Origin: Chara braunii
Taxonomy: Eukaryota; Plantae; Charophyceae
Direction: 5' to 3'
Assembly (NCBI GenBank): GCA_003427395.1
Contig: BFEA01000008.1
Location: 2,174,336-2,238,335 of the forward strand
DNA length: 64,000 nucleotides
Shown: one piece after another, positions 2,583 through 50,426 of the stretch
How positions within the stretch are numbered: the stretch's first letter is position 1
Layout: the number at the start of each line of letters is the position of its first letter
Notes under the pieces: model-generated
What the model was told of the DNA's origin: nothing
What the model saw: the letters and a program-made list of their open reading frames with translations, nothing else
The model's database searches: none
Made by a program: the position numbers and the translations under genes

Positions 2583-2613
2583 AACATGTTATTCGTTAAA
2601 ATAGGACATTATA
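2583..2613 (+). repeat. Left TIR of giant element
   Basis: AACATGTTATTCGTTAAAATAGGACATTATA. Confidence 0.9.
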
Positions 2614-2659
2614 ATATGTCCTCTTTCTAACGAATTCATTTTTGGCTGCATTCCAAGCA

Positions 2660-3260
2660 ACGTAGGCACGCCCATCCACGACTTAAGCACATGCAGAAGT
2701 GTGCCGAGATCCGTACTTGTGGAACTTTATAAATGATATCCCAAATGAGGAAGCGTGTTCAAACCCGTACATGTTAGGCACGCCGCACGGGAACCTTGTG
2801 TGGAAGTGTGCTGGGATCCTTACTTGTTGAACTTCAAAAACATGGCACTGCTGGGAATCCTGTGCGGAAGTGTGCTGGGATCCGTACTTGTTAAACTTCA
2901 TAAACGAATAACGACAGACACGCCCATCAGGGAACCCTGTGCGGAAGTGTGCTGGGAGCCTCACTTGTTGAACTTCAGAAATGTGTCGTGAATCTTGTGC
3001 CGAAGTGTGTCGGGATCCGCACTTGTTAAACTTCATAAACGAATAACGACAGGCACGCGCATCAGGGAACCCAGTGCGGAAGTGTGCTGGGATCCGTACT
3101 TGTTAAACTTCAATTCCATAATTGTGACGAGCAATGTGTCATGATTGCATCCTCGTTGGATAATTATATTAGAAGACGTAGAGTAGCGACAGGCACGCCC
3201 ATCCGGGATGCCTGTGCGATAGTGTATCGGGAGCCACACTTGTCAAACTTCAAGTTTGTG
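2660..3260. repeat. Left subterminal tandem repeats
   Basis: ~7 copies of GAAGTGTGCTGGGATCCGTACTTGTTAAACTTCA-like units, a variant of the 24-bp motif. Confidence 0.8.
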
Positions 3261-3959
3261 AATGTGATGAGCAAGTTGTCATGATTGAATCCTTGTTGGA
3301 TAATACTATTTATTTCTTTTATGCGTGAGTTGTATATGCATGGCTATCGTCTCGTCCGAGGCGGTTGTCTGGATGTTGTAGAGATTCAGACTTCTTTAGA
3401 AGTACAAACAGTAACTGTTATTTTTGACATACAATTTATTTTTCCCGGTCAAGAACGCAAAATTGTCGGTCACATGTAATTCAAGCGGTCACAAGTACAT
3501 GATTGTCTATGCACACAAGAGACGTGATGTCACTGGTCTTTCACTCTTTGCATAACGAACCTCACACCCACACACTCGCCGAGATTTGTCGTGCATCCAC
3601 ACTCCAATTCGTCATGTCGCACCACACACACGAATATCATTTCGAGGTGAATTATATGCACAATCTTGGATGACCTGGACACAATTTGCAACGAGGACTG
3701 CAATGCAATGAATGTAATGACACGACAAACGAGCCGGACCTGACAGAGATTCTGAAGGCAATACGTGACACCAAACTGACAGTCAACATACCAAAGACAA
3801 CTCAAACCCGCAACACTGAAAAAAAATAATGTCGTTGTGAAAGCGACAGTTAAAATATGAAATATTCTGAAACAGAAGTTTGCAAATCAATCGAATCCAT
3901 CAAAGACAACGACATTCCAAGACACATGATGCTAGTTGTCGTCTAATATACGGAATATT

Positions 3960-4643
3960 TTAACAAGAGAACCTGAAAGGCGGTCGATCGCCACGTTGCA
4001 ACAGTGTTGCAAACATCAACATAAACACCCCGCAACGAACTCCATCCACTTGTCTAGGAACTCCCTCTATAACAACATTTGCTGCCACCGACTTCCAGCA
4101 CCTGCACGAGCGCCTATGTGATGTTTGACATTCCAAATAGTGTACGATCAACTCGAAAACACTAAGGTAAAAACTAGAATCGGCTACAACGCAAGGAAAA
4201 GAATCGAAAATCTCAAGAACATTATCTCTCAAACTCACGGAAAGGAGGATCCAGTGATCATTATCTTTGAGGACTGAAACAAAGATAATATCATATTCAA
4301 GCAGATCCACGTTTTTAACCCATCTTTCCACCCCGCCGTGCCCTTGAAGTTGCAGTTTACTGAAGAAGAAAGAATTAAAGGTGAAGACTCGAAGGCCTGG
4401 CGGGATGTCACTTGTCCCATATGCGGTCGTTCCTAATAGCGCCATGTAGAAGTTGACCACCTCATCATTCACCCTGCCGTCGGTAAGTGAGAGGGTGAGA
4501 ATATCCTTCGCTGCAATTCGCAACTGGCCATCGTGGAGGGTTGAGAGTACAGTGTCAGGTGGCACCAAGCCTCGTTCAATGTCGTCTAAAACCCGCAAGC
4601 TTCCAATCGCAGTCACTGCTGTTCCAGGTGCCGTGGCCTGCAC
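3960..4643 (-). CDS. Ulp1/SENP-family (peptidase C48) protease domain, probably a terminal exon
   Basis: LSLTDGRVNDEVVNFYMALL, FNSFFFSKL, VERWVKNVDLLEYDIIFV, DHWILL (His), FDS (Asp), PRQVDGVRCGVF (Gln/Cys). ORF begins at a GTG beside a pyrimidine-rich TGCAG acceptor-like site. Confidence 0.9.
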   Translation of the reverse strand: MQATAPGTAVTAIGSLRVLDDIERGLVPPDTVLSTLHDGQLRIAAKDILTLSLTDGRVNDEVVNFYMALLGTTAYGTSDIPPGLRVFTFNSFFFSKLQLQGHGGVERWVKNVDLLEYDIIFVSVLKDNDHWILLSVSLRDNVLEIFDSFPCVVADSSFYLSVFELIVHYLECQTSHRRSCRCWKSVAANVVIEGVPRQVDGVRCGVFMLMFATLLQRGDRPPFRFSC

Positions 4644-5012
4644 TGCACAACATCGAGCAAAGGACAGGGGGGGGAAGTGAGAAACGGAACACTAAGGATT
4701 CTCCTTCATCACACGGCGAGTAGCTAAGTATTTCTCATACATGGCCTGACCCCTAGTCACAGATCGTGGATATGTCCTTTTCTCTGGGGGCAGAAGGGAA
4801 AGACACTCCTCAATGGCAATGGCATGCTCCTTCTTCCCGATTTCGACATCAACCCTTGATGCCCTTAACATGTCCTTGTGTTTTGTCGTCAACCCCGGGA
4901 CTGTATGCAATATGTGTTCCGGATATTTAGAGGGTCTCCGTGTTCGAGACGACCCTACCCCTCTACAACAGAAGAAAGACAAAACGGAAAGTGAATACAC
5001 GTTTCCGAAGAA

Positions 5013-5570
5013 GAACCCGACGAAACGACAATTAAAGGACCACGAAATCTAAAAGACACAAGACCCATGCAATTACAGAACCCCGTCATGCCATGAGAGT
5101 GCGAGAGAGAGAACTTCCGCACCAGCCACGTTGCAAAATAAAACGAGCAGTGCACTCGAGCTCGACACCCCCGCCCTTCAGAAGGGAAAAGCACATCAAG
5201 TCACAGAAGGGGAAGGCAAACATCTATGAAGTCCGGATCCCGGCGGACTTTTCCAACCCAGGGAGATGACCCAACCCCTGTGCCACCGAAGGAAGAGAAA
5301 ACGAAAAATGAACTCACGTAATCCAAGACGAACCCGACGAAAACGACAACTCAAGAACCACGAAATGTAGAAGACGCAGGACCTATCTATTTACAGAGCC
5401 CCGTTTAGCCATGAGAGAGATATAGAATACTTCCGCGCAGGCCCCACTGGAAAACAAAAGGAGCAGTGCGTTCGACATCGACACCCCGCCCTCCAGAAGG
5501 GAAAACCTCAACAAGCCACAAACCCGGAGGCCAAACATTTGTGAAGTCAGGATCCCGGCGGCCTTTTCCC
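5013..5570. repeat. ~245-bp diverged direct duplication (5013-5256 / 5330-5570)
   Basis: Both copies start GAACCCGACGAAA(A)CGACAA and end in a copy of the 24-bp motif. Confidence 0.75.
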
Positions 5571-6800
5571 AATCGAGACACCAAAAGAGTAACCGCGTTA
5601 CGCAGCGGCCTTGGCAGTGCGGATCCCGGCGGACTAAAACCACCACTCGTGTGAGGGAACGCTTCAACAAAAACACACATGTTTTTGTCTCGTCCGCATT
5701 GACAGACACTGCGGTCACTAGCGCGCAGACAGAGTGGCGTTTGTCACAGCTTACCAGCTGGTTTGTCTCTCCACTCCATAATCGGCGAAGTTGGTACGGG
5801 CAAGGCCAGCACGTCGAGAGCTCGAGTGTCGGCGACAGTTTTTTAGGGGATGTGACATCTTGTTGTCCCCCGATCCCGCCTTCTCCTCCGCTGGCGATGG
5901 TCGGCGGCAGCATCGGAGAGCTCGTCGGGGAGAAATCGACGACAGATCCCCCGGAAGGTTTGACGTCGAGAGGGTCGTCGACACCAGGCATCAAGGACGG
6001 CTGCGCGGACATGTGGTGGTCGCCCAGGATGCCGTCGATAACTTCTTCGATGTCAATACACACACTCGGTTTAGTCAGACTGACTGTTACACGAGCTTCG
6101 TTGAACCGGTGTTGGAGATCGACGGCAGACATCATTGCTTGGACCTCATAGTCATCACGTTCTGCCGAAAGGCTTGTGACCACCTCTGTCTCCATACCCA
6201 GTGCCGTGTCATCGTCGTCGTTGTCTTCCTCGCGGTGTTCTCCATACAGCTGCCCGAATCCGTCAGAAGACTCCCCAGATCTGTCATCGTCGTCGCTGAA
6301 AGTCTGTTCGTCGTCTCCTGTATCGAGTTCACCTTTTTCCCCCTCCTGCCCTCCTAGCAACCCAGCCAACTTCGTTTCTTCCCCTTCCTCTCCTTCATCC
6401 TCTTCTTCCTCCCCTTCATCCCCTCCTTCCTCCAATTCCTCCCCTGTGTCTCCTTCCTCCACTTCCTTCTCTTTGTCCATCACCCTGCCTTCTTCCCCTG
6501 CATGCAATGCAGCCACTTCGCCCGAACCCGTGTCGATTTCCGATGAATGCGCTTCCCGCCCGCCGCACGCAGCCCCTCTCGCCAACACCAATATCCCTGG
6601 TTGGCCCCCCTTGCCTGAAGATGTTCGGATCCCGACGAACTTCGCCGACTCCCTGTCGCTGGGCCCTCCACACGCCTTGCCTGAAGAAGTTCGGATCCCG
6701 GCGAACTTCGCCGTCTCCCTGTCGCCGGGCCCTCCACACGCCTTGCCTGGAGAAGTTCGTATCCCGGCGAACTTCACCGTCTCCCTGTCGCCGGGCCCTC
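5383..6800 (-). other. Acidic/low-complexity ORF (probable linker of the cargo gene) with a 66-bp tandem repeat x3 at ~6600-6800
   Basis: E/D-rich 464-aa ORF; repeat unit KFAGIRTS.GKACGGP.DRE, each containing the 24-bp motif. Confidence 0.45.
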
Positions 6801-7044
6801 CTTCCGCACCCTCTCGCTTCGACTAAAGCGGTTGGCGATCCCCCACAGGCGGCGAAGTCCCATCCCTCACCGCACCGCTGTCTATTTTGGGATGACGACT
6901 CGCCACCCCCGGTCCTGACCAGCTCTACGTGTCCGTCCTCTCTGTCCGCTCTGTAAGCATTGAAGTTCGGATCCCGGCGGACTTGAACGTTTCGACCGAG
7001 CCGGCACGGAGAGCAACCAAGGCCGCCATCACCGAGCAGGCGGA

Positions 7045-10000
7045 TCAACTGGGCACGTCCTTCGACTGTGCCGAGCATTCCGGACCGGGACCGGTAGACT
7101 GCTGACGCCCGAGGGCCTCCCCCGTTACCCCGCCGCTGCCTTCCGTTGTCGTGGTGTCGCCCTGAGACCCGCCCTCATCCTCGTCGCCCTCGTGTTGTCG
7201 CCCCGGGACTTGTTTGCCGCCCCCAGCCTTGTCGCCCTTGTTCTCCCCACCGTCCGGTCCCCAGGACCCTGTACTTACATGCATCCCACAGGGAGGGGGG
7301 ATTTTCCAGTTCACCCTTCCTTTGGAGGGGCTCGTGTCGAGGTCGTAGTAGTCCTCCGTCAGCTCCAACCAGCACTTGTCCTGAAGTTCGGCGAACAATC
7401 GCCCGGCTGTGGAAATGACGGACACGTCTTCGCGTGCGAAAGAGCCATTCTCGGCCCTCACTTGCTGGAGGACCGCAATTCTAGCGATGTCGAGGAAGTC
7501 AGACTTCGACCCGCGAGGGAGTGGCATCCATCCTCCGTCCGGGACAGCGACCACCACGATCCACTCACCCTTTTGGATCGCCGGCTGGATGACTCCTGGA
7601 TGCTTAATCATGTCATGGCCCCAATCCGCCTCCGTGGAACGACTTTGAGGCTCAGGCAGGAAGTGAATGTTGGCATTCGTCCAAGACAGATGATCGGGCG
7701 GGATGTCAGACCCGGGACGCAGTGAGCGATGGCCGGAGGCCAGAGCTTGCATTCTCTGCAGCAACTTCATCGGGGTAGTGCTAGGCGCTGGTTTCGCTAT
7801 CGGTGACACAAGGGACGCTGGGCTTGTTGACGGACCTGCCAAGGACAACCCTGTAGCGTGCTGCGCGGAATGTTGGTCGTACTGCAGGTCGAGGCTTTCG
7901 GTGTCGCTGCCCTCCTCGTCCGCGGTCGCGTCGAACTCGATGTCGGTGGTTTCCTCGTCTTCCGTGGAGATCAAGGAGGAGTAACTGTCAAACGTCAGCT
8001 CCTCCTCTGACTCCACGAAGCAAAGGGACTGCAACCTCTCGAGGAAGGTCTTCGTGTTCATGCGGGAGGCGTCGTGGTAGTTGTCGAGCAACGTGAACAT
8101 GTGGTCCTTGCGGTGCACGTACTCGGCGTCGGTGTCTCTCTTCGGCCACGTTTACAAGAACAAGAAGTCGTATATCTTGTTCCGCTTCCTCGCACTCAAC
8201 TTGAACCACATGTCCGTCTTGTTGTTCCACGCGCGAGCCCGAGTCCCGGTGACGACCATGAACTCGCAATTGTGGGCACCCGAATTGACCTCGCTTTTGA
8301 CGAGATCAATTGTAAATTGCAAGAGCTCGGAGTTCCCTTTCTTCGCGATGACGTGTCGTCCTGCCTTCAGTACTTCCCAGACTGACCGCGCGTGTGGCTT
8401 CCCGAGGAAGACGACACCCTCCCCCTTCTTGGTGACGGATTCGAGAAGCTGAACGAATTGGGCAGGGTTGCATTTCATGTCCCCGTACACAATGCCCCGA
8501 CGTGCAGGCGAGGAATGCAACCAGTCGCAAGCGTTGAATGGGATGTCGGACACATCCGTTTGCGTAACCTTCTGTGGTACCCGCACTGCAGCAGCGGTGC
8601 CTGCCGGCAGTTTCCCCTCGTAGACAATGGACGTGTTGACCCGCAAATCGTCGCCTTTGAAGAGTATGTACATCCGGTCGTCTTCCGTGTACAAATTGTT
8701 CCCGACGGGGAAGCTTTTCTTCTGTTGACTCCTCACCCACTTCCCTTCCAGCAGCTTGACGAAAGAAAGATGGTTCATGCAGGCCAGAAAGTAGAGGTTT
8801 TGCTGCCGCAGAATAAAAACAACGAGCATCCAATGCGACGGACACCACGTCTGGAGTTGGGAATCCAGAGTGTCGAACGCTTGCGGTTTCAAAAGCTTCA
8901 GGTCCACCAGTTCGTACAGATCGAGGACGAAGGTGTGACTCTTTGTGGCAACCACTGCCTCCTTCACCTCCGCACTCCTTATGTCTGCCTCCAAGGGGTC
9001 GTTGCCGAATGGCGCGATGGATGTCACGTTGCCCGTGTCATTCCATTTTATGTGCACAATGCCTTCGGCGAGCGCGATCTCTCGACTCTTCAGTCTACTG
9101 CCAGTCAACACGGACAGGACCTTATTCCTCCAGTCGACGGACAACTTCTTGTGACCGGCCAGCTTCTCCGTCGCCTCGATCGATCTGTCGTCGTCGCAGC
9201 CCATGTAGGGCGGGCAGTCCTTGAACAGCGAGGAGTCAGTGACGTATTTCGTGCTCCCATCCCACAACTCAGCATCCAAACCACGACTCTCATTCCGGAC
9301 CTTGATTTCAGGAACGCGAACCTCTGGCTCCAATCCACGTCCAGCCTTTTGTCGTGCTTGAACTAGTAGTAGTTCCACAGACGCACCAGCACCCGGTTGC
9401 ACTTCACCAGATTCACCACCTCCTGGACGCTCAACTTTCCGAGCTTCGCCAACGCTGGGGAGCCGGCCTGTACCCAAAACACCTCGCAAGCGAGCACCTT
9501 TTTCAGGACGTGGCACTTCTCGTTGTCTGTCAGCGACTCCATCGTTTTCCAACAATGCGCGTCCGGCTCTGGCACTTGCACGAACCACTCGCCCTCCTCT
9601 TTCTCCTTTTTGCCTTTCTTTGTCAGCGGGTCCATAGGGACGTTGTACACGACCTCCTTCCTGCCCAGCTTGTCATTATGGATGTATGCAACCCCAGGCT
9701 TCACATTTTTGACTTTCTTCTTCCGCATGATCCACTTTGCGCCGTCGTGTTCGAGCAATATGCCTGTCTCCCATTTCTCGAAAAACTTGACGGCCAGTTT
9801 CCAGACGTTCTCCCCTGCCATCGCCAGTGGGAAATAGGAGCGCAGGGCAGCGCCTTGTTTCCTGATGGCCTCATCGCCCTGCTGATCTGCGAGAATCCAC
9901 AAGTTGTTGTGCGGTGTCATGTTGAGTGCGACATTACAGAATTCACGCCACTTCCGGACCTGATCCTGTTTTCCGATGGGGTTCCCCATAACAGCACGCG

Positions 10001-11629
10001 GGCAACCGGCGCGCTTCCACTGCCACCTTATGTCCCTCATTGACAGCTTCAGCTGTCGTGGGGGCGCCTTCAGGTCCTTCTTGTTGTCCTGGGAACTGAC
10101 AAGGAAGTACCCTTCGAAGTCGTCGTCCGAAAAGTTGACCATTCGTCCAGGCCACCGCTCGAAATCGTATTTCCTGGCCACCTCGCTGCCGAGCATCGAC
10201 CTCGCTGCAGCCGCATTGTGCTGCCCACACACCGCGTTGTAGTAGTATTGTCCCGCCAGCTCATCCCTCCAATCCTCCGGCCTCAGATGTTCTGCCTTGG
10301 TCCCCGGAGTCGGTTTATCAAGCCCCAGCACGCCAGCTTCAGGGTTGGTAAATCGTAAGATTGGGCTTTGTTTTCGAACGCCAACCGCATCGCTTCTTTG
10401 ATCCCTTCCACGAGCACGGGATCCAGGGACCACTAGTTGTACAGGTCCTCCCAGTCCCCGAGGTCGACGACCTGCGCAGGGCTAATGTCGAACTCCCGCT
10501 TTGTCCGAACGCCGTCTTTGTACTCGAGGAAGTACCCGGCGTCGACGTCGATGGGAGTCCCTGTTGTCGGTGGAGAAGACGGTCCAGACTCAGGCTGCTT
10601 CTGTCTCGAAGACGGTCGTTTGGCAACCTGCCGGCCCTGCTCCCCCTCGGTCCCCTTGCGTTTCTCCCCCGCAGTCCTGGGGGCCTTGCTCTTTAACTTC
10701 TTCGTAGAACCGGCAAACTCGTCTCGACGATCCCCCCTCCTCTTTTGCGGAGCTCCTTGCGAGCCTAGGCCTCCCTCGTCCACCTCCTCCACACCCTGTC
10801 CCTCGCTCGCCTCCAAGTCGACCTCCGAATAGGCCGCCACCTGTACTGCAGGCCCCGTACTCTTCCGCTGAACCGGAGCATCAGTCTGAACCCCAGGAAT
10901 AGACAACACAGACCGCCGCATGTCACTCAACGACAGAGCAGTCCCCTCATCCTCGCTGTCGTCGAACTGACCTCGGCTCTCGCCACGGTGCAGCTGAGTG
11001 GCGGGACCAGAACCCAGATCACCGCCCTCCGCCGCTGCCCCGCTTGACTGGCAACCACTGCATAGCTTCAACGACAACGACAGCTCCAGGGATGGGTTGA
11101 CGTCGCAGGGGACGTCTAGAGCGATGTTTTTGTCCTCCAACATGTCGAAAAATTCACATGCCAAAACAAAACTGCCCCCGAGAACGAGTTCTCTGTAGAA
11201 CAGGGTGTTCACAGCACCCGCTCCGAACCCCTCACACAATTCAAGGTCCAACAATGTCCTTTTCGAATTGGCAACGACGTTGCCCTTGGCGCCATAAACT
11301 TTCTGCATATAGAAATGTCGCCGGCCCCCCTTTGCGTCCTCCCACCGCAAGACGGCACCAAGCACTCTACGCCTTCTGCTGTCATCGATGAAGATGACTG
11401 GACCACATGGCTGCCCAGTGGGGTTGGAAGCATCTCCACAGCACCAGTCGATGAACCATTTCGACCTCGAATGGTTCGACCACCCCTGCGTGGCAGTAGA
11501 CGACCGCCTTGTGGAATCTTTTCGTGATTCCTTCACGGAGGTCCCTGTTGGCTCCACCTCGCCCTTGGAAGAAGACGTACTGTCTGCGAACGACAACGCA
11601 AATCGAACAGCACACCATGAAGTCAACGT
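7045..11629 (-). pseudogene. Long disrupted cargo gene: N-terminal domain, ParB/Srx-like domain (~10500-10050), beta-class N6A/N4C DNA MTase-like domain (~8950-8290), unknown C-terminal domain
   Basis: ORFs 10433-11626, 9363-10433, 8152-9588 and 7045-8118 join through in-frame stops (10433, 9363, 8152) and frameshifts (~10332, ~9290). ParB-like: FDISPAQVV..YN*WSLDPVLVEGIKEAM..LPTLKL..YYYNAVCGQHNAAAARSML..WPGRMV..LVSSQDN. MTase-like: FVLDLYE..GKWVR..NNLYTEDDRMYILFKG..NPAQFVQLLESVTKKGEGVVFLGKPH..VLKAGRHVIA. Confidence 0.65.
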
Positions 11630-13048
11630 CTGTCAAAACACAGGAGAAATAGAACACTTGCTGCTGCACGTCAATGCAGGCTGTAGCGCAGCGAAAACCG
11701 CACACGAAGACACCCGGGCACCCAAATCCGGAACGGTGAGAAGGGGTAGTCCGCCGGGATCCGAACTTCAAGTGAGCAAGAGACCGAGAGGCAGACAGAG
11801 AGAGAGAAGCAAGTGAAAACTCGCAGTGCGCATGGGATCACGCGCTGTTTATGCAACACACAGGGCACCCCGTAGAACAAAGATAGACAAACGCACAGTG
11901 AAAATCGCGAAGTCCGCCGGGATCCGAACTAAAGGACGGTGCGTGAGATAGAGACGGTGGAAGCAGATTTCGGGAATTTTTCGCAGGAATCAACTGGCGG
12001 TCATGTTCGAAGCTCTCCGGGTGAGATAGAGCCAGCGTCCCAAAACCGTGCTCGACCAAACGCACTCCGGAACCGTTGTTGGGCGGGTTATGCAACCCAC
12101 CCGGAACCACGAAGACTCACGACAATGCAACGCACCTCCCGAAACGTGAAGTTCGCCGGGATCCGAACTTCAGGACGATGCGACAGGCAGAAACGGCGTC
12201 AGGGACACACGATCCTTAAGTCTAAGGTTGTTAAACTCAACCCCGACCCAGGAAGACCACATCGGAATGAAAGGCTGGTTGAAACTAAACCGAACTACTT
12301 CTGATTTCCGATCTCGCGTTATGCACAACTTGGCACTGGATGAACCCAAGCTCGAAAGCGACAGCCGTGTCAACATTTCATAGGTCCTTGGACTCTGGCT
12401 GTTGCCGGAATCCACGAGGGATCCGGAAGACCACCGTCTGTGGCAATAGACAGGCGACTCCTGAAGTTCGCCAAGACCCGAACTTCAGGAGGACGCGAGA
12501 AAGAGAGACAGAGAAAAACATTGGAGCAACTTCGAGTCCAAACGCAAGACGGTGTTCGACCAAGGCGCACCAGGAAAAACCCCGAGGTTCCACAGCCGAC
12601 CGCAGGTTTTGATGGCAGCAGTCATTGAGTCCAGGCATAATTGGTAGCAGGACCGTTTCCGACTCCGCTCAGCACTCGAAGCTCGGAGGCCGGTAGGACG
12701 CACAGGCCAAACCGCGAAGTTTGTCGGGATCCGAACTTCAAGAGGGCGCGACACCGAAAGAGACGCATGCACTAGCAACTGCTGCCTCCCGCGCCTTTCT
12801 CCACTACTAAAACTCTGCTATGTTCGGCAGTACACAAGCCTCTCACTCGTCTCCCTTCTTTTCGCTTAAGCAGGATGTCCAACCACACATCCAAATTTTG
12901 TGACAATCGCGGTTACCCGGGGACGAGGTCGCGAACCGTAGCCATACGAAGCATTCATTGATGATCCGTAAACGCGGACCAGCGGATCGTCGACCGTTGC
13001 AGTTTCTGAAAAGACGGACATGTATTTCATCCTAACAAACACTCCCGG

Positions 13049-13962
13049 TCATGCTAAGGAGTTCCCTATACAGCCCCGTATGGCGGACACTTTCTCCTCG
13101 ACCTCCCTATGCAACGAAAAGTTTTGGACCGGCCCTGCTATAACCAAATCTCGCCACCCATCTACACGTTCAGGCCCGCGCGTCGGCACGAATTTGGACC
13201 CCTCAATTACCACCTCGTTGTGTGATACAAGCACAACTGCATCGACGAGTTTCCTGCTCTTGTTCGACACAGCGACACATAGAACTCTGGCGAAATCAGA
13301 CCCAGACACTTTCAATCGCACACAACAGTATGACACAACTTGTGGAGAATTCCCGGGGCACCGGAGCGGGTACTGGTCCAAGAACGAGCAGTGACGAGCG
13401 CAGTCCAACAACTCTTGTTTCCACGAGCCTCCCCAAGTTCGTGGCGACGACCTGACCTGACATAGTGGCATTCGAGGTGGCTGAAATTGCGGCTAATGCA
13501 GCCCAGTGCTCTGCGCATGTGGTTCAGGAACTTGTGTCCGAGGACAGCATTAGGCAGCGGGATGAGGTTCCCGAACTCCAACATGTTGGCGAATTTGTAC
13601 TGGCTTGCCCAAGGGCAGCGACTCTCCATCGTGGCCCAATTCCCATCACACCAATCGTCAATATCCGCGTCCCTGCATGGGACAACGGTCATCCAGGGGT
13701 CCTCGTCGAAGTCCTCTGTGGTCGCTTCGTGGATCGTAGTCACACCGTTGAAATGCCGCACTGATCTCGCGCAAGGAGGAAACGGTTCTGCCAAGCAAAT
13801 GTGCGTTTCGGGACTCATGGTTTGTGGTGTCGAGAAGATCGACTCAAAGATTCGTGGTGTCGAGAAGGTCCCATCCATTACGTGCCCTACACACCACGCG
13901 CACATACCAAACGACACACACGGGGACGCTGACACTCGTAAACATAGTTGGCGAGCAATCAA
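13049..13962 (-). pseudogene. Frameshifted ORF pair of unknown function (cargo gene or upstream exon)
   Basis: Overlapping ORFs 13312-13962 and 13049-13471 give a complex, protein-like ~280 aa with a shift near 13450; same strand as the other cargo. Confidence 0.4.
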
Positions 13963-13977
13963 ACGACATAGGTCCCT

Positions 13978-16153: not shown

Positions 16154-16689
16154 ATGTTGTCTATCTACCCATCTATTGTATCTTTGTCGCCGCGTGTTTC
16201 GATTAATCATCCTTTGGGAAGATCGATGGCTACTGCGTTGGGACAGCAAACAGGAACAATGGAGTGTGGTCAGTGGTCAGGATGTGATGAACTGACGAAT
16301 GCCGATAGCTCCGATCGAACGGGCTGTGGCCGGTCACGAAACATAATCACCCCGCGCTCGATCGGATGTTTCTCCATTCATTAGTTTCATACACAACAAG
16401 ATCACATGAGATCCACACACAAACGTGTGGATCTCGTGTGCTCTTGTTGTGTATGAAAATGATGAATGGAGAAACATCCGATCGAGCGCGGAGTGTTTAT
16501 GTTTCGTGACTGGCCACAGCGCGTTCGATCGGAGCTATCGGCATTCATCAGTTCATCACATCCTGACCGCTGACCACACTCCATTGTTCCTGTTTGATGT
16601 TTGAATGTCGTAGCCCTCGATCTGCCCAAAGTATGATTGATCGAAACACGAGGCGACAGAGATACAATAGATGGATAGATGGACAACAG
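16154..16689. repeat. ~535-bp near-perfect palindrome (loop ~16419-16424)
   Basis: Arms are reverse complements (GAGATCCACAC-acaaac-GTGTGGATCTC at the centre); a degraded extra arm lies at ~15875-16040. Confidence 0.92.
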
Positions 16690-17892
16690 ATTACAGTTCT
16701 TCATTACAGCGTACGCAATCGCCGGCTATTACGCACGCACGTCGCTCAATGCCAGAATACATCAGGATTACCCTCGGGATGCGAAACAATTCATTCAACC
16801 ATCGCCGCACACCTTGGCGACAATCTACGCGTGTTCAATCGACAAAACAACACACACGCACATGAACAGACACATGCACACACACACGCACACACAATCG
16901 CACACACGCCGCGTACACAAACACGCCCCTGACATAGAGACACTACATACGCAAACCCAAAAAAAAAAATGCTTTAACACACAATCAGCCGCATGCGCAC
17001 ATGCAAACATACACTCGTCACGCACAAGCAAACACAAACACAACCGCACGCACACATGCAAACACACACTCGTCACGCACAAGCAAACACAAACACAACC
17101 GCACGCGCACCTGCAAACACACACTCGTCCAAACAGCGCAGACGTGTCAGCAGAAAAGCCGCCCACAAGCGCTCACAGAAACACACACGTCCCGGGTTCG
17201 TGCGCACTCACCTTGTGAGAGTGTCGAGTGGAGATGCGTGCGGATCTGGACGTCGATCGAGACAGGAATGCTTCGACCTTGTGCCGTGCGCTTTGTGTTG
17301 GTGATGGTAATGCGTGGAGCGTCGGATGCGCTAATCCAGAATCGAGATGTCGTCGTTGAGTCGACGGGATGTCGACGCGCGACGTCGAAGATGACGCGGG
17401 CAGCGACTAGGGAGGTGGAGGGAGATGCGTCGTAGAAAAGGTAGTGACCGGGGTTTAGAACGACTATCCGTTCGCTTCGCTACCTATGGTGCTCCAACTG
17501 TGCGGGGCGATGGTGTTGACGACAGTGGTGGTGCGAGGCGTCCGTCCGGCAGCATCTCCCCAGCAAAAAACGCAGAAAGCGGCGCTCACGCCCCGGGCGC
17601 CGCTCGTATTTGTAGGCGCGCGTGGGTCGGGTCCCCTTCGGGTCTTCCATTTCGGAGTGCCTCGCAGGGTCCGTTTGACGCCGCGAAAGGTTGGCCACAC
17701 GTCGGTCCGCACATCGAACGGTGGCCACACGTCAAATTTCCCGCTAGGGGGGACCCGGTGCGCGCGACATGGCAAAAAAAGTCCCTTCGAACAGGGCCTT
17801 CCCGGGGGTCATGGAAAAGGGCCGTCGTCCCTGGCCCCTTGCATTCTTGTGTTCGCGTTCGCGGGCCCCACCAAAGGGGTTTTCGGGCTGCG

Positions 17893-17893
<1 letters not shown>

Positions 17894-17933
<40 letters not shown>
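17894..17933 (+). repeat. Poly-G tract (40 nt)
   Basis: Seen directly. Confidence 0.9.
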
Positions 17934-18795
17934 CGGAGGCGGTTGGGCCCGGTTTTCCGCAGTGCGCATTGCGAAGTCGCATTCTGGCTGTTCGATTTGC
18001 GGATCGGACGACCATAGTGTGTCTTCTAACATGGTGTCACGTCCTGCGCGGGCGTCCGACGTGCATTTTCGAACCTGGCGTGGGGTGCGACGACAAATGA
18101 GTATCTGAGTGGGGTCTGGTGCTGCCCATTTGCGTCTCCTGCCCGACGAGCTGGTCCGCGCGACGTCATGTAAGCGACTTCCTCCATCGCCTGAGCAAAA
18201 TCCGTTGTCGCGCCTCGTGTCTCCGAGAGCGGGCGTCTTGATTTCCCCCCGCCATCGCGTCAGTCGAATGACCTTCAACATCCCCTCTTGCGTTCCGCGT
18301 CATCGCGTGTCCGCTGTCGTCTGCGCTTCGCCCTCGTGACATGGCCGACCACGCCATTCAAGGTACAGTGCTGTTCTGTCTGGCCACGTGTCCTCCATCG
18401 ACTACAACTGCTGACGTTGGGGTTGAGGTGCATGCTTGTGTGACCATGAGACGCGTTGCATCGTGCCACGTATAGCGGGTGGCGGGTACCCCTGTCGACG
18501 TGAAGGGATTTGAGTCCGCGGCGTCCATCCCTGCATGTTGTTCACTCTCGCTCATTCATTCCTTTTCTGTGATTCGTTTTCTTGTTCTGTGTTCATTCTC
18601 GCTCGTTCATTCCTTTCATGACTTCATTGCTTGTCCCTTTCGATGTAAACCACCCCCGCGCAGATATGTGCGCGGGATTGAGACGACACTAGTTGCCCTT
18701 GTGTTGCCACGTAGTCGACAGAGCCACATATTCAGTGACGAGAACCTGAACACGGATCGATGACGTCCTCCCGTTGTTGAGCGCCACCCCTACTC

Positions 18796-19085
18796 AGCGT
18801 AAGAGACAGCCACTGCATGCCAAGTGGATGATCGAGAACCGCGCGCAGATCCCTGTCGTGCTCGCACAGTCGCCNCCCCCGCCCCCCCCCCTGTGTGAGA
18901 GAACCTTTCTCTCACACAGGGGGGGGCGGGGGGGGCGACTGTGCGAGCACGACAGGGATCTGCGCGCGGTTCTCCAAATGATTAAATGTGCGAGCACGAC
19001 TGGAGGGCATTTGTGCGAGCACGACTGGGATGCGCGCGCGGCTCTCGATCATCCACTTGTCCTGCATTGGTTGTCTCTTACGCTT
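18796..19085. repeat. GC-rich hairpin/inverted repeat centred ~18905
   Basis: CCCTGTCGTGCTCGCACAG...CTGTGTGAGAGA-acctt-TCTCTCACACAG...CTGTGCGAGCACGACAGGG; outer arms AGCGTAAGAGACA / TGTCTCTTACGCT. Confidence 0.88.
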
Positions 19086-20119
19086 AAGATGGCTGGTGTC
19101 CAACACCGGGAAGACGTCTTGCCACTGAACATGTGCCTCTGTCGCCGTAGAGACCACGTGTCAACCTGTTCCCCCCGCACACAGCGTGCAGATCATCCGT
19201 CCTAGAGCCCACCGATGTTGAGCGCGAGCTGCTGGCGCTGGTCGTGAGCGATGCGCTGCGTCACTCCTTGCGACCAGCGAGAGGAATGTGTGCGCGACAT
19301 CTGAGGGCTCCATGCCAAAGAACGCACAAGCGGTGTGCGCGCGATGGAGAACGACATCGCAAGTCGCCACAACGACGATGCCGTTTTGTCGGCGTGATCA
19401 CCGCTTGCGTCGTGGAGAACACCCCGTGGTCACCGGTTGTGTCGTGAAACACCCCGTTTTGTCGGCGTGATCACCGCTCGAGTCGATGGCCTCGTTCAAC
19501 ATCGAACAACGTGGTCCCCGCCGCGATACCAACGCGGCCTCCATGTTGTTCACTCTCGCTTGTGTCGAGGGCCTCGTTCAACATCGAACAACGCGGCCTC
19601 CATGCTGTTCACTATCGCTTGTGTCGTGAAGTGTCATGGTGATGTCGTCGCGTGGCCATGGGGAAGAGCGCACGCACATGACAACACACCAACAATCATG
19701 TTGTAGTTCGCGCTTGCAGTTGCAACGGCGACCCCACTTGCCCGCACGAGTCGATAGCTCCGAACACCCTGCCAGCCGCCACCGTGCGAGGGTCGCAACA
19801 CGAAGTTCGGATCCCGGCGAACTTCGCTTGTTGGCGCTTGCGATGTGGCGAGCTGCGCAAGGAGTTTGTCGGCGTCATCATGTAGACTTGCGCTGTTAAA
19901 ACCACATAGCCAACGCTGTGAGCTTCCATTGTCGGTGCACGTAATGACACAAAGCGCGTCTGTCGCTTTATTTCCTCTCCGCACGAACGTAAGAGCATAT
20001 CCAACACTTTTGGCTGTTCAAACTACGGTCCAAACATTTCTACAAGCAATTTCTTCTGAAAGAATTCCTGGAATAACCTTCTGAGGCAGCCGCCAGGCCG
20101 TGGTGATGTCACCTTCTAC

Positions 20120-22300
20120 AATCCAAGTTCGGATCTCGGCGGACTTCGGGGTTCCGCGCAAATCCAACCGCCCCGTTCAAGACCCCGGACTGTCCGACGT
20201 GGTCTGCTAGTCGGAAACCCTGGGGTGCGCAAAATGCTCGCTTCGAGAAATGGCTTATAGGGGTTTATGGGGGGGTGCGCCCAAGCATCGCCTGCTTCTG
20301 TGCAAACGCCAAGCACCTGTTCCTATAGATGCGACCGCGCGAAAACCTGTTACTCGCTACACTCGCATCCGCCAAGTTCGGATCCCGGCGGACTTTGAGG
20401 ATCCGCGGGAAACTAACCGTCCTTCGCATGAGGTGTGGACCTTTGCGTGCGAGTTGCTACCGGGAGGAGTATTGGTTCGTAAAATTCCTCGCTGTATGGA
20501 ATGCCCATTCAGGGGTTTACAGGGGTTTCCATCGGTGCCATCAAGCGTGTCCGTTATCGGGGTGCCGTCGATCCCGACGAGTTTTGGCAGTCGGAGGCCC
20601 TGGGGTGCGCCGAATGCTCGCTTCAAGAAATGGCTTGTAGTTGTTTACTGGGGGTGCGCCCAATCATCATCTGCTTCTGTGCAAACGCCAACCAACCGTT
20701 CCAACAGTTGCAGCCGCGCGAAAACCTGAGACTCGCTGCACTCGCATCCTCCAAATTCGGATCCCGGCGGACTTTGAGGATCCGCTGGAATCCAACCGTC
20801 CTACGCATGACGCGTGGACCATTGCGTGCGACTTGATTGCGAGAGGAGTATTGGTGCGCAAAATTCCTCGCCGTCTGGAATGCCCTTGTAGCGGTTTAAG
20901 GGGGTTGTCGTTGGTGGCAGCAAACGTGTCCGTTGTCGGTCTGCCGTCGATCCCGACATGCTCTGGTAGTCGCACGTTCACATAGCTGCAGCCACAAGAA
21001 AATCAGTTGCTCGCTGCACACACATCCGCCAAGTTCGGATCCCGGCGGACTTTGAGGATCTGCGGCAATCTAATCGTCATTCGCATGAGGCGTGGACCTT
21101 TGCGTGCCCGTTGCTTCCGGGAGGAGTTCTGCTGCGCAAAATTCCTCGCCGTCTGGAATGGCCGTGTAGGGGTTTATGGGGGTTGACGTCGGTTACTGCA
21201 AACGTGTCCGTTGTCGGTCTGCCGTCGATCCCGCAGTGTTCTGGTAGTCGCAGGCCCTTCGTTCCGCAAAGTGCTCGCTTCAAGAATAGGCGTTTAGGGA
21301 TTTATGGCGGGCGCGGCCAAGCATCACCAGCTTCTGTGCACACGCCAACCACCCGTTCCAATAGTTGCAACCGCGCGAAAACCTGTTACTCGCTGCACTC
21401 GCATCCGCCAGGTTCGAATCCCGACGGACTTTGAGAATCCGCATGCATTTAACCGTCCTTCGCATAAGGCGTGGACCTTTTCGTGCCAGTTGGTCCAAGG
21501 AGGAGTATTGGTGCACAAAATTCCTCGCCACCTGGAATGCCCGCGTAGGGGTTTATGGGGGTGGTCGTCGGTGACAGCAGACGTGACCTTCATCGGTCTG
21601 CCGTCGATCTATGTTGCCCCCTACGGGTTTGGACCGTCGCGGAGCGCGGAGTCTTGTCGTGGACGTGCTCGTGTTCCGGTGCGCTTTCCGGTTCGCGCTG
21701 TCGCACGTCGACGTTCCCGGCGCGCGAATCGGGGTTCGCCTTGTCGATTGGCGGAGTCGGGGTTTGGGAGGGTTGCAGGGGAGGGGGTCTTTCATCCATT
21801 TCTGCATTTCGACATGTTATTTACGGGAATCTGACCGTGGGAATCTAACCGTTCTTCGCATGAGGCGTGAACCTTTTCGTGCGAGTTGCTTCCAAGGGGA
21901 GTATTGTTGCGCAAAATTCATCGCCGTCATGAATGCCCGTGTAGGGGTTTGTGGGGGTTGCCGTCGATGACAGCAGACATGTCCATTGTCAGTCTGCCGT
22001 CGATCCCGACGTGTTCTGGAAGTCGGAGGCCCAGGGGTGCGCAGAATGCTCGATTCAAGAAATGGCTTATGGGGGTTTGTGGGGGGTGCCCCCAAGCATG
22101 GCCTGCTTCTGTGCAAAAGCCAACCACCCGTTCCAATAGTTGCAGCCGCACGAAAACCTGTTAATCGCTGCACTCGCATTCCGCCGAGTTCGGATCCCGG
22201 CGGACTTTGAGGATCCGTGGGAATCTAACCGTCCTTCGCATGATTCGTGGACCTTTGCGTGTGAGTTGATTGCGCGAGGAGTATTGGTGCGCAACATTAC
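20120..22300. repeat. ~380-bp diverged tandem array (5-6 units)
   Basis: 24-bp motif at 20373, 20752, 21030, 21409, 22185 with shared flanks (CGCGAAAACCTGTTACTCGC, AAAATTCCTCGCCG). Confidence 0.85.
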
Positions 22301-24614
22301 TCGTCGTCTGTGTCTGTAGGGGTCAATTTGGGGTCGCGCTGCGCCGAATTGTATGGTGGTACATCCACCGCTACCCTTTGTTCTGCGAGTGTTGTCGCAC
22401 GACGACCAATTGAAAGCGTGATGGCCTTGCTTCTGTGCGCCCGAAAATAACGTTCCTTGCGTGCCCCCGCTGATGCTCCCTTCAAATGACACCAGTCGCG
22501 CAAAAACCGGTTCCTTGGTGCTCCAAGGCCCGCTTGAACGACGACTCCCTGCGAGCTTCGGGACTCTCCGTTATTCTGACCGTCATTTTCAACGGCTTAG
22601 ACTTCCCCGTGCGTTTTTGTGCGCGGTGGCCTGGTGGTGCGCAAAATTTTTCGTCTTGAGGATTGCCCTTAAAGGGGTTTATTGGGGTTGACGGCGGTTT
22701 CTGTGGCCGGTTCGAAATGCGGTCTGCCGTTGATCTTCGTTGCCCTCCGATNAAAGGAATCGTCGCGACAGGTGAGGTTCAGTCGCCGATATGCTTCTGC
22801 CTCGGCGTGCTTTGCAGTTCGCGCGGTCAGGTGTCAATATTGCCATCGCACAAGTCGGAGATCGCATTCTCGTTTTCGCGGACCAGGATTTGTTGGGGTT
22901 CTGGGAGGGTCTTCCATCCATGGTTGTAATTTTCTTCTCCACGCCGCCTGGGTGTTGGAGTTGAGCGTTGTTCTACCTTTGCCTTTCGAAATCAGGTAGT
23001 TTGGTCGATAGGGGCAATCGGTGTTCGCAGGGGTCTCTTGGGGCCCGCGCTACGACGACTTGTGAGGTGCTGCACTCACGACTAGCCTTCCTACTTACAG
23101 CGGCAGAGCGTGGACACGAGGTTCGGAGCGCGGCGAACTTTCCAGTTCTGGGTGATGCTAACCGTCCTTTTGCGCGGCCTGGTCCATCGCTTGTGTTGTT
23201 ATTGTCGGGGACCCATGGGTGCGCAATCAAGCTCGCCGTGTGTGTTGCCGTGGTTGGGGTATATAGGGGTAGCTAATGGTGGCAGTCATTATTGTCGTTC
23301 GCGTGCGGAGACGCTTCGGTGAGAAGCCGCGCGGGCTGCAAAGGCTTTCAGTACAGACACACATACTTCGAATCGACATGTAGTTACTCGGGGGTTGTGG
23401 GGGTCGGTTGAGGGTCATTAAACCATGTTATTTTTTGTCTTCTTCCTCTCATACCATTGCTTTCGTTACGTCGATTGGCCGACNNNNNNNNNNNNNNNNN
23501 NNNNNNNNNNNNNNNNNNNNNNNNNNNNNNNNNNNNNNNNNNNNNNNNNNNNNNNNNNNNNNNNNNNNNNNNNNNNNNNNNNNNNNNNNNNNNNNNNNNN
23601 NNNNNNNNNNNNNNNNNNNNNNNNNNNNNNNNNNNNNNNNNNNNNNNNNNNNNNNNNNNNNNNNNNNNNNNNNNNNNNNNNNNNNNNNNNNNNNNNNNNN
23701 NNNNNNNNNNNNNNNNNNNNNNNNNNNNNNNNNNNNNNNNNNNNNNNNGGGGGGTTGGCCCTTAATTCTGTAGTAATCGTGCTTACAGTTTGCTCTGCTG
23801 TTTTGCAGGGTGTGGAGACGAATTCGAATGAACCGTTTAATCCGCACTGGATAGTTTAATCGATTTCGCTAACGGGAATCACAACCGTTGCACCGACGGT
23901 TACATGACGGCGCCAAAGACGGCTCGGCGAANGGCCGCATGAAACGGNANATGGAAACTGAAGAAGCCGTCGACTTGCATTGCCAGCTACAACACCTGGA
24001 ATTGGCCCCGACGAGCTCTTCGGACAGTTCGCCGTTCCAACAGTCCACTGCAGTTTTCCTCAGAAAAAGAAGTCTAGCTTTTCGTGAGAGCTTTGGAGGT
24101 TGCATCCAACTGCCTACGGATTTGGCGACAACGTCCGCAGGTGAAGAACCGTCTGCCTCCTGGATCGAGTTCCACTTTCCTGGCGAGGTGAACCTCGCCA
24201 CTTCGGCGCACAGCAGTTGCGCGCGAATGGGTGCTTCTTACACAACATCTGATGACGAGAGTGAGAAGTTGGTGGCCACTGATTACTCATCTGGACAACA
24301 GTCCTCTTCCACTAGACCTTTGCTTCGCGCTACCTCCGGTAGTACGGAGTTGGTAGCCACCGACTATTCTTTGGAGGAACTTTCCACAGCACGGGCAAGT
24401 CCAACGCAAGTGCGAAGTGATGATGCGAGAAGGGCGATACTGCAGATTTTGCCCGCACCTCTGTCAGGGGTGATGCAGAGAGAAGGGCGATGCAGAGAGA
24501 AGGGCGATACAGAGTCAGACTGTGTCGGAAGCGTCTGACACGGGTGATGCAGAGAGAAGGGCGATACTGCAGATTTTGCCCGCACCTCTGCCAGGCGAAA
24601 GACGAACGTATAGC

Positions 24615-26177
24615 ATGGCTAATAGGAACGCTAGGAGGAGAGAACAGTACAAAAGAGCGAGAAACATGTTGTCCGAAAAAAGAATGCTCATGGTGCGCGG
24701 CATGGCATGTTGCAAGGCTCGATGTTCTTACGACGTGTCGCCTGAGGAAGTGCGAAAGGTTAGATAAGGACTGTACAGTAAGACTCCGGTGGAGCGAGCT
24801 GAGTGGTGGATGAAAAGTATTAAGGATTTCACAGTGAATGAGGGTGGACAGAGACGTGTCCGCCCCGTGGAGTTTGAACGTTCGATGTGCGTCAAGGCGT
24901 ACTGCAATGTACTCGGTGTCTCGCGTAATACATTTTACAGCTACAAAAAGCGTTTCGACAATGCTTACGTGCGTTCTGAGCATGGCCTGACGGGAAAATG
25001 TCGGCCAACCAGTAAGACGGTCGCCATGCTTGCCATCATGAGAACGTTCATCGAGTGTCATGCGGATAACATGCCGAATGAGGTGGCTAATGAAGGTGAG
25101 GTTTCTAGATCGAAGCTTCAACTCCCCGCTGCTTTCACGAAGCGATCAATTTATGAGTCCATCAAATCAGACTTTCTGGCCGCTGGCCTCGCTGTCTTGT
25201 CTGAGTCCAACTTCTATAAATTGTGGCGGAAACACTTTTTCCACATTTCCCTCACGCACTCTAACACGTTCACGAAGTGCGCCGTCTGTCATGAGCTGAA
25301 GGAACGTATACAGTATGCTCCTCTTCCTCGAGATCGAGAACAAGCTCGAGACGATATGAAAGTTCACCAAAGGAGGCAAGTTGAACACAGATTGGACTAT
25401 AGTCGAGCGAAAAGTGATTCGATGGTCCGTCGGAACGAGCGTTTGTGTCTCATCATTGACGGCATGGATCAGAAGAAAACAACTATCCCCCATATTGGTC
25501 AGGCTAACTACTCGAAAGCACTTAGGCACGAGATGATGATGAAGACGAATCTGAGAGGCGTCATTGCACACGGTAGAGACCCTAGTATATATGTATACAC
25601 GTGGTTTTCGTGTTTCAAACACGATTCGAACACGATCGCTACTTGTGTTATGAGAACCCTTGTCGAGATTCAAGGGAGCGGGACGCCACTGCCACGATGT
25701 TTGCGCATTCAAGCGGATAACTGTTGGCGGGAAAACAAGAACAAGTACATATATGCGATGGTTGCGCTGTTGGTTAAGTTCAAAGTTTTCGAAGAGGTAG
25801 AAATAGGTTTCATGCTGGTGGGACACACCCATACAGACATTGACGCTACTTTCTGTGTTTTCTCGAAGAAATTGAAAGACATAGATGCTTATATTATGGA
25901 CGAGTTCTTCGAGCTCATAGAGCAATCACACAAAAAGCCTCCCAAATGTATTTTCCTCGATACGATGGAAGATTGGATTAGTATAGTAGACCCGTGCGTT
26001 GCGTCAGACATTACCGGTATTTCGAAACCGCACTTGCTTAAATTTTTGATGGTTGGAGATAATCCGGGCATGTTGTACAAGGAGTTTTACGATGACGACG
26101 AATGGTTGCCCGAGAAAGGTCCGATTTATTGGAGATTGTCAGTCGAATTGATGAGGTTTATAAGTGGCATGAGGTAG
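24615..26177 (+). pseudogene. Sola-like/DUF7869-type DDD transposase with one in-frame stop at 24765-24767 (intact 462-aa portion 24789-26177)
   Basis: CCKARC, CAVC...H zinc-type motifs; CLIIDGMDQKK, GVIAHG, HDSN, LRIQADNCWRENKNK, FMLVGHTHTDIDATF (three candidate catalytic Asp). Family name is from recall of these motifs. A possible N-terminal extension from ~23939 is disrupted by a local duplication (24420-24590). Confidence 0.8.
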
Positions 26178-26659
26178 AGCAAGTGACATGTTGTGTGCGT
26201 GACGCCATCGGTAAGTCCTTGGCAAGTGTCTGTAGGTTTGTAAGGGTGAAGTACATTTCGGTGTTCTCGAGGGTGGCGACGAATGGACAACCACAAACCC
26301 TTGTTTTCGAGTCGTCTATGAATGCCTTATACGGGTTTGGTTCTAACGGGACGCGGGGACATCGGTAGGAACTTCAAATTTTGTAAATGATAGCGTTTTT
26401 GAAAGTTTACATTTTTGCGGCTCGTAGCGTTTCATTTAGACGTAGTTCAATGTAGAGTTCGCTTGTAGCGTTTAATGTAGACGTACTTCAATCTTGCATT
26501 TGCGATTTTTTGCATGTGTCGATACAATGTTGAACTTTAGTTACCAATACAATTTTTGACTTTTAATTTTTCATGGGTACGACATTTCTTGGAGTGAGAC
26601 AGAATCCATGGTACTCACGTGAATTTCAGCTTCATATGACAATGTCATATCGGTTTTTG

Positions 26660-27300
26660 ATTTTTTGTCAAAGTGCGTCGGAATCCATACATAAACCATC
26701 TAGTTTCGCCTTCACACAATGTCATGTGTAGTACGTCTGATTCAAGTGCATTTCAATGCATGACAATGACATGTCAGTTTCGTCTTTAAAGTCACATAAA
26801 TTGTCGAAGTGTGATAGACTCCAAAATTATCGAAGTATCACAGTGTTGGAATCCATTCATTAATCACACCGAACAGACTGAGTGTCACGTCTTTTAATAA
26901 GTATGTAGTACATAAATTATCAAAGTGCGATGGAACCCATAGTCACTGTACTTAAACCGTAATCTCATTTGTCGTGTCATTCGTTTGTCGTGTAATTCGT
27001 TAAACTTTGTCGTGAATAGTATACATTTAATAGAGTTAAAGCAAAAATTATCGAAGTGCGACGGAATCGATACTAGACTATTAGTACTTAAACCATCCGT
27101 GTGCTTACCGTAAATGTCTCACTTCGATTGAGTTTCAATAAATTAAGGGAAGTCACAATGTCATCTAAAAGAGGTTCGACTCAATGTTGACTCAAAATTG
27201 AGCAAGGTGTAAAGAAATCGAGAGTTCAACAATTCATGTTGTAACCGTAACGACTTTTAAGTTACAAAATTGATGGAAGTGCAATGGAATCCACACTTAA
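26660..27300. repeat. Right subterminal degenerate repeats
   Basis: ~6 copies of AAATTATCGAAGTGCGACGGAATCCATAC-like sequence, related to the 24-bp motif. Confidence 0.6.
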
Positions 27301-27453
27301 TCCATCATGATCAGTAAGTGATTGCCTTGAATCTCCAGTTTATATTCAATTTATGGTCTCTCAATTGCATTCTTCGGGTTCCTAAGTTTCATTCAGGTCC
27401 AAAATATAGCAATTTTAACATGAAATTAATAGCGTGCGAGTACCAATTTAAAA

Positions 27454-27484
27454 TATAATGTCCTATTTTAACGAATAACATGTT
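27454..27484 (-). repeat. Right TIR of giant element
   Basis: TATAATGTCCTATTTTAACGAATAACATGTT, the exact reverse complement of 2583-2613. Confidence 0.9.

Positions 27485-44141: not shown

Positions 44142-44215
<74 letters not shown>

Positions 44216-50383: not shown

Positions 50384-50426
<43 letters not shown>

Follow-up and report, generated by a model that had tools for sequence, protein, structure and literature searches.

We analyzed a window of 64,000 nucleotides of Chara braunii DNA (assembly GCA_003427395.1, contig BFEA01000008.1, positions 2,174,336 to 2,238,335 of the forward strand) and, within it, the element at positions 2583-27484. This element, hereafter the window copy, is a dead copy of a 25-31 kb cut-and-paste transposon family in Chara that is apparently undescribed. 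That such a transposon family exists, with ParB-like, amino-methyltransferase-fold and Ulp1 cargo, is practically certain; three complete copies have the same termini but different target-site duplications (TSDs). Our overall reading, to which we give a probability of about 0.6, is that the window copy is a decayed representative of giant Sola1-type transposons, a lineage old and diversified in Chara, with palindromes for self-recognition and an anti-silencing cargo. The status of the element is solid; what its cargo and palindromes might do is argued by analogy.

The window copy is bounded by terminal inverted repeats (TIRs) that match at 31 of 31 bases (2583-2613 against the reverse complement of 27454-27484), and identity ends there. 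The sequence TTTT is present at 2579-2582 and at 27485-27488. Perfect 31-bp TIRs and TTTT flanks had both been noticed in an earlier sequence-only reading of this DNA, and both were borne out. The other loci compared carry L numbers. Two of them hold complete copies, L005 on scaffold BFEA01000144.1 (29.4 kb, TSD CTTT) and L008 on scaffold BFEA01000084.1 (31.4 kb, TSD CACT, TIRs almost unchanged), so that three TSDs are available (TTTT, CTTT and CACT) for copies that have their termini and layout in common. A chance match of TTTT within T-rich flanks is ruled out by the differing TSDs of the other copies. Lone left ends in L001 and L006 have different flanks.

L008 is a distant subfamily (53% transposase identity and about 38% cargo identity), and L011 and L019 are more distant ones, with a cargo just 22-33% identical. 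These last two were compared on interior layout, their termini lying outside the sequence reached, and show, in order, the transposase, a long spacer, the cargo gene on the strand opposite to the transposase, and then Ulp1. The layout is common to four diverged subfamilies, between which synonymous sites are saturated. The sequence-only reading had proposed that the ends tie a DUF7869-type protein to a real element and define a large multi-gene family. Both proposals hold: the protein is tied to TIRs with variable 4-bp TSDs, and TIR pairs at other loci enclose transposase and cargo with the layout kept. Conserved cargo order, which that reading had named as a check, is likewise seen in the four subfamilies. 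The features of the window copy are as follows.

2579-2582: left TSD, TTTT (CTTT/CTTT and CACT/CACT in other copies)
2583-2613, + strand: left TIR, 31 bp, starting AACATGTT; same in L001, near-identical in L005, L006 and L008
2697-3304: left subterminal repeat units of 135-140 bp, with a palindrome variant in each
2697-23140: subfamily palindrome AAGTNCG-N8-CGNACTT, about 35 dispersed copies in 19 flanking contexts
3963-4598, - strand: Ulp1/SENP-type SUMO protease domain, retaining His, Asp, Gln and Cys; putatively the last exon of the cargo gene
4716-4961, - strand: short coding stretch separating cargo body from Ulp1, conserved at 73-88% identity in paralogues
5747-11578, - strand: large cargo gene, a pseudogene here, with N-terminal, ParB-like, helical, methyltransferase (MTase)-fold, and C-terminal plus low-complexity regions
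8155-9030, - strand: beta-class amino-MTase-fold domain, with DLC[ED]P for DPPY and FLGKxHA for DPFxGxG
10080-10480, - strand: ParB/Srx-like region, so called only for its predicted topology and its GQH[NT] motif; contains one stop and one frameshift in this copy
13055-13878, - strand: open reading frame (ORF) X of about 250 amino acids, frameshifted here; with paralogues on the downstream side of the transposase in L005, L002 and L004
13970-14888: 183-bp tandem array of 5 units, two palindromes per unit in opposite orientation
20123-23280: degenerate array of about 380-bp units, one palindrome per unit, upstream of the transposase
23484-23748: assembly gap, non-coding, probable real size 0.7-1.0 kb, with poly-G on its right edge
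23873-26132, + strand: DUF7869/Sola1-type DDD transposase gene, with start frameshifted, stop at 24765-24767 and C-terminus deleted
26120-26224, + strand: deletion junction with short microhomology, joining the transposase to the tail of a downstream ORF-X copy
27454-27484, - strand: right TIR, 31 bp
27485-27488: right TSD, TTTT

A + strand transposase-like ORF with DGMDQ, DNC.RENKN and GHTH.DID motifs had been described before, and we confirmed it at 24768-26174, where it matches PF25273/DUF7869 (E 2e-54). Its catalytic residues D231, D317 and D359 (numbered from 24768) are each at least 90% conserved in 92 homologues. In the AlphaFold model (predicted local distance difference test score, pLDDT, 88), D231 ends beta1, D317 ends beta4 and D359 lies on the following helix, and the top Foldseek matches are IstA, Mos1 and retroviral integrases. 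Model and structural matches agree on an RNase H/DDE fold; as modelled, the DUF7869 ORF is an RNase H-fold DDD transposase.

Compared by eye, without a profile score, its motifs fit the Sola1-1_AP row and not the Sola2 or Sola3 rows (PMC3985635 supplement). They are unlike those of Sola2-1_HM and Sola3-1_HM (DFAENY-type, DWSQK-type), and the transposase of L011 has the motif DNCGGQNKN. The termini of the element are AAC and its TSD is not TTAA; Sola2 and Sola3 termini are GRG or GAG. TIRs with a 4-bp TSD are reportedly features of Sola elements. The likeness to Sola1 lies in the DDD transposase with SNxIxTC, DNCxxxN[RK]N and F..GHT signatures, the short TIRs and the 4-bp TSD. The Chara element differs in its length of 25-31 kb, where a typical Sola element has a few kb, in the DGMDQ-type first motif of its transposase, which belongs to a DUF7869 branch, and in the addition of a large divergent cargo gene, ORF-X and interior palindromes.

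The nearest transposases to the window ORF are C. braunii proteins, then animal and Riccia ones. In a tree built from DUF7869 proteins only, the Chara transposases form one clade with one Joint Genome Institute (JGI) protein (support 100/100), apart from the Riccia ones, and those of L002 and L011 are sisters (100/99). A metagenome scan with the transposase as query returned one short contig, and no TIR pair was found in the Riccia and amphioxus loci. In amphioxus (L012 10001-22916, P0019), where no TIRs were found, one gene model contains DUF7869 fused with a weak Ulp1 domain, so that the partnership between Ulp1 and DUF7869 transposases may be old. An NIPBL match of alignment A1 was set aside; it falls within animal C-terminal extensions.

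The assembly gap at 23484-23748 lies upstream of the transposase, and no reading frame runs across it. L006 bridges it without any N, with 955 bp between anchors and collinearity on both sides, L005 has 734 bp at this position, including its own 74-N gap, and L003 is collinear across the region. The gap had been named as a place where a mis-join would undo the element; collinearity in these independent copies rules this out, and the 265-base estimate is probably too small.

As read here, the window copy is non-functional because of stops, frameshifts and a 1.75-kb deletion. In the transposase, the start is disturbed and a stop occurs at 24765-24767; about 1.75 kb is missing at 26120-26132, corresponding in L005 to the transposase C-terminus and a second ORF-X. 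Three stops in the cargo gene, at 10433-10435, 9363-9365 and 8152-8154, stand in positions occupied by Gln in paralogues, and its reading frame shifts near 10325 and 9300. Between the window copy and L005, the transposase end is 92% identical (dS, synonymous divergence, 0.16) and the cargo end 77-84% (dS 0.5-0.9), which suggests recombination between members of the subfamily. Elsewhere, one scaffold holds two family copies (L001 12269 and L003) in head-to-head orientation, separated by about 77 kb. Of these, the L001 copy lies directly downstream of another subfamily's transposase, which suggests nesting or clustering.

Minus-strand cargo near the left end had also been predicted, and was found as Ulp1 at 3963-4643 and a cargo gene at about 5.7-11.6 kb. 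The window cargo pieces were searched singly. For the fold, the model is that of a paralogue, P0170 (residues 278-1290). Its model (pLDDT 83) matches beta-class DNA MTases acting on N6-adenine or N4-cytosine (N6A/N4C) with a Foldseek probability of 1.0. PDB matches are Mbo45V Mod, M.BceJIV, M1.HpyAVI, CcrM and RsrI (E 5e-6 to 3e-5), together with rotifer N4CMT and, in BFVD, phage and giant-virus methylases. The P0170 model has the permuted MTase fold, with motif IV ahead of motif I. The catalytic motif IV, [DNS]PP[YFW], is absent from the domain in 133 proteins, with DLC[ED]P as consensus, and the S-adenosylmethionine (SAM)-binding motif I, FxGxG, is replaced by FLGKxHA family-wide, while the acidic residue after the next strand is retained. 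Because DPPY and FxGxG are missing across the whole family, the domain is probably a pseudo-enzyme; on the model it is an MTase scaffold and falls outside the enzymes. Thus the DNA-MTase-like label given in the sequence-only reading stands for the fold, but the lack of catalytic motifs leaves a chromatin-modifying enzymatic activity unsupported. Searched by sequence, the cargo gave nothing meaningful in Pfam, NCBIfam, PHROGs, PDB or phage genomes, apart from a weak Rossmann match to KtrA.

The ParB-like label fared less well. The predicted order of strands and helices fits ParB/Srx and a GQH[NT] motif recalls it, but none of the statistical tests was positive; the arginine patch GxxRxxA of CTP-binding ParB is missing, with GQH[NT]xxA in 59 rows instead. 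The best ParB E value was 0.27 (PDB, Pfam, NCBIfam and PHROGs), the BFVD ParB match of the cargo model was weak (E 0.06), and hhalign comparisons with P1 ParB and with six phage ParBs gave scores that lacked significance and fell within the shuffled range. ParB as the identity of this N-terminal conserved block is a lead, unproven as modelled. The SUMO-type protease, in turn, is clear: the ORF at 3963-4643 (- strand) is a Peptidase_C48 (E 9e-19, 68.6 bits against a cut-off of 20.7) that retains the His-Asp-Cys triad and the oxyanion Gln.

Relative to beta-class N6A/N4C MTases (M.RsrI, CcrM, M1.HpyAVI, rotifer N4CMT), the Chara domain is alike in fold and motif order; it differs in having neither DPPY/SPPY nor FxGxG, in lying within a protein of more than 1000 amino acids, and in a family found only in Chara and one metagenome contig. 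MTase domains captured by transposons are known from charophyte and dinoflagellate retrotransposons, which carry C5 DNA methyltransferases (DNMTs) (PMC5890265), and from DIRS1, whose N6A-MTase domain is inactive (PMC4738411). Those are retrotransposons with other MTase classes, whereas in Chara the carrier is a DDE DNA transposon and the MTase fold is beta-class.

The cargo belongs to a large family: 111 clusters at 50% identity match one cargo piece. All 30 matches of the piece at 8155-9672 are C. braunii gene models, and nine of the ten distant cargo clusters checked are from Chara. Beyond Chara, a homologue search with a length filter returned no distant cargo relative except one metagenome contig. 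This JGI contig (L007 1-5167, sample 3300064063), of freshwater type, carries a near-open homologue that shares 29% identity with P0170 and whose MTase motifs are degenerate in the same way. The ratio of nonsynonymous to synonymous change (dN/dS) is 0.13-0.45 in every cargo segment, post-insertion decay included; therefore, the cargo worked for active lineages.

ORF-X gave no Pfam or PDB match. Four tandem copies of it lie at 18960-22876 of L004, one of them 92% identical to the window ORF-X; two of these tandem copies precede a sequence ending AACATGTT like the TIR. L003 has no match to the interior ORF-X. ORF-X may move or duplicate independently.

The interior of the element is populated with palindromes. 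At no more than 1 mismatch, the 22-bp AAGTNCG-N8-CGNACTT has 31 matches in the window, all within the element (0.07 expected by chance); the count of 35 comes from a looser scan. They are missing from the conserved cargo core, the transposase and the last 4.3 kb of the window copy. L003, L005 and L006 have 27-46 copies. In L008 the palindrome is a different one, 26 bp long and present 54 times, L011 has two further ones in 13 and 11 copies, L002 has 8, and an element in Riccia sorocarpa has 11-14; in the partial L004 and L019 loci, no palindrome stood out. These palindromes are 19-26 bp long and mutually exclusive between subfamilies, with zero cross-matches, while the TIRs are nearly unchanged. 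The sister transposases L002 and L011 share palindrome arms. In the Riccia element, Ulp1 is divergent from the transposase and no ParB-like or MTase-fold gene lies within 10 kb. Because of this palindrome without an MTase-fold gene and the arms shared by L002 and L011, the transposase appears a likelier palindrome binder than the cargo protein.

Two long hairpins also occur in the spacer, at 16155-16688 (264-bp arms, 91%) and 18762-19118 (107-bp arms, 83%), possibly nested MITEs (miniature inverted-repeat transposable elements). Beyond the element, another palindrome, GCTGGA-N7-TCCAGC, has about 10 copies at 39965-54626, with related sequence in L002 and L004. It is accompanied by a 91-bp inverted pair (39901-39991 and 52051-52141) and probably belongs to a different element of the same habit.

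The mechanism that we favor can be put as follows. Acting through the conserved TIRs, the transposase would cut out and insert all 25-31 kb as one unit. By its palindromes the element would recognize itself: they would be bound by a dimeric DNA-binding protein that the element encodes, and the likeliest such protein is the transposase, after the example of Spm TnpA or AtMu1. The cargo protein, binding DNA or chromatin without catalysis, would recruit an active SUMO protease to the element, and delivery of this protease would oppose SUMO- and 5-methylcytosine (5mC)-based silencing in the manner of VANDAL and KIU (precedents in PMC5735166, PMC13317346 and bioRxiv 10.64898/2026.08.24.746577). Pseudo-methyltransferase, SUMO protease and palindromes together look like a kit for marking or protecting the element's own copies. 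For an anti-silencing role of cargo and palindromes as such, the analogy brings us to slightly under an even chance.

The VANDAL/KAONASHI Mutator-like elements (MULEs) of Arabidopsis (PMC5735166, PMC13317346) are likewise DNA transposons with Ulp1 cargo, and their family-specific short motifs are amplified in non-coding tandem repeats and differ between related families. Their transposase is of another superfamily (MULE as against DUF7869), their motifs are 8-9-mers where those of Chara are 19-26-bp palindromes, and Pfam gave no match to a VANC-like gene or MULE-type domain in the Chara cargo. VANDAL elements have binding and demethylation; in Chara both are putative. In Spm/CACTA TnpA and AtMu1 self-activation (bioRxiv 10.64898/2026.08.24.746577), motif clusters likewise diversify with the element lineage and a transposase-type DNA-binding domain is the likely binder, but the motifs are terminal there and interior in Chara, where the element adds an MTase-fold protein.

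Several observations weigh against our reading. All Chara loci derive from one assembly, and no copy with fully intact genes was seen among those examined. Ulp1 is probably fused to the cargo gene, which rests on several automatic gene models that join the two. In the 183-bp array the palindrome is no better conserved than the remaining unit (0.83 vs 0.87), and among orthologues its 89% identity, against 74% for flanks, is biased by alignment seeding. The ratio of observed to expected CpG (o/e) in the spacer is 1.08-1.18 in five copies, vs 0.52-0.70 in adjoining DNA, but this signal is not seen in L008, L011 and Riccia (0.83-0.99). Finally, changes from C to T on the window copy's own branch amount to 8.1% at CG, 5.1% at CHG and 3.0% at CHH; because of this excess at CG and CHG over CHH, the window copy, to judge from its substitutions, was itself methylated.

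The palindromes could also be mechanical transposase sites, spread inward like CACTA/hAT subterminal repeats and pairing ends 25-30 kb apart, with a cargo that aids transposition through target access and transposase deSUMOylation and has no silencing role. The variants that begin 115 bp inside the left end would fit, as would a motif that tracks transposase kinship and occurs without an MTase-fold gene. We nevertheless consider this account unlikely: the distribution is strongly asymmetric, with zero palindromes within 4.3 kb of the right TIR in the window copy and zero between TIR and transposase in L008, most of them lie in two promoter-side spacers, and they turn over completely while the TIRs are conserved.

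Decidedly unlikely, in our view, is epigenetic self-marking by a ParB-like/amino-MTase-fold/SUMO-protease protein of bacterial or viral origin. Here the cargo protein would recognize the palindrome in a parS-like manner, or be recruited there by the transposase; it would then write, read or mimic an N4C/N6A mark that shields 25-30 kb from silencing, and protein and palindrome would co-diversify between subfamilies. More doubtful still is an active, remodelled amino-MTase that binds the palindromes and writes a 6mA/4mC (N6-methyladenine/N4-methylcytosine) self-mark blocking or countering host 5mC. The beta-class fold and motif order would agree with it, as would purifying selection on the cargo, GATC-like cores in several palindromes and the activity of charophyte transposon-borne C5 DNMTs (PMC5890265). 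Residues at the catalytic positions are also family-conserved (D 24/30, G 27/30, K 28/30, H 26/29), with the acidic residue past the next strand in 28/30. However, no member has a PP-aromatic flipped-base motif or a glycine-rich SAM loop, the Riccia element has palindromes without such a gene nearby, and DIRS1 offers a precedent for an inactive N6A-MTase (PMC4738411).

That cargo and palindromes are neutral passengers, the former picked up as fragments from host or virus and the latter repeats multiplied by slippage and gene conversion, is highly improbable: many palindromes do sit in tandem arrays, all copies examined are damaged and copies recombine (dS 0.16 for the transposase and 0.5-0.9 for the cargo, window copy vs L005), but dN/dS far below 1 in each cargo domain largely refutes the cargo part, gene order is kept in four subfamilies with saturated synonymous sites, and one palindrome recurs in 19 unrelated contexts.

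Outside the element, a foldback at 1747-2574 (384-bp arms, 94%) ends 8 bp short of the left TSD. Its pieces also occur in L005 and L006, so it is a separate, dispersed, MITE-like repeat family. An empty site for it was looked for and none was found. Just beyond the right TIR lies a decayed long interspersed nuclear element (LINE) at 28070-35129 (- strand; reverse transcriptase 28070-28903, endonuclease 30106-30963, CpG o/e 0.55), with further LINE pieces at 40166-40957 and 47333-47773. At 55609-60758 there are several short repeat families, dispersed and with 35-90-bp units; the segment 57749-58311 recurs in L001 and inside the L003 copy and may mark the border of another element.

Sola elements, Ulp1 cargo and transposon-borne methyltransferases are each already known (PMC4455052, PMC13317346, PMC5890265, PMC4738411). 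As the sequence-only reading had supposed, their combination seems not to have been described: a literature search, with most subscription papers and Repbase reports outside it, found no paper on a Sola1-type/MTase-fold/Ulp1 combination or on DUF7869 in Chara. New relative to that reading are the subfamily-specific palindromes, ORF-X and the broken state of the window copy.

DUF7869, a widespread domain found in molluscs, echinoderms, cnidarians, amphioxus and liverworts, is now tied to a TIR element with 4-bp TSDs. About 100 or more 'hypothetical' Chara gene models are explained as transposon cargo and not host genes, and the element itself is an unusually large cut-and-paste transposon with a prokaryote-type amino-MTase fold in its cargo. 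Sequence-specific anti-silencing is so far known from MULE and Spm elements of flowering plants; the palindromes allow a direct test of whether it had a separate origin in another superfamily, in an alga related to land plants.

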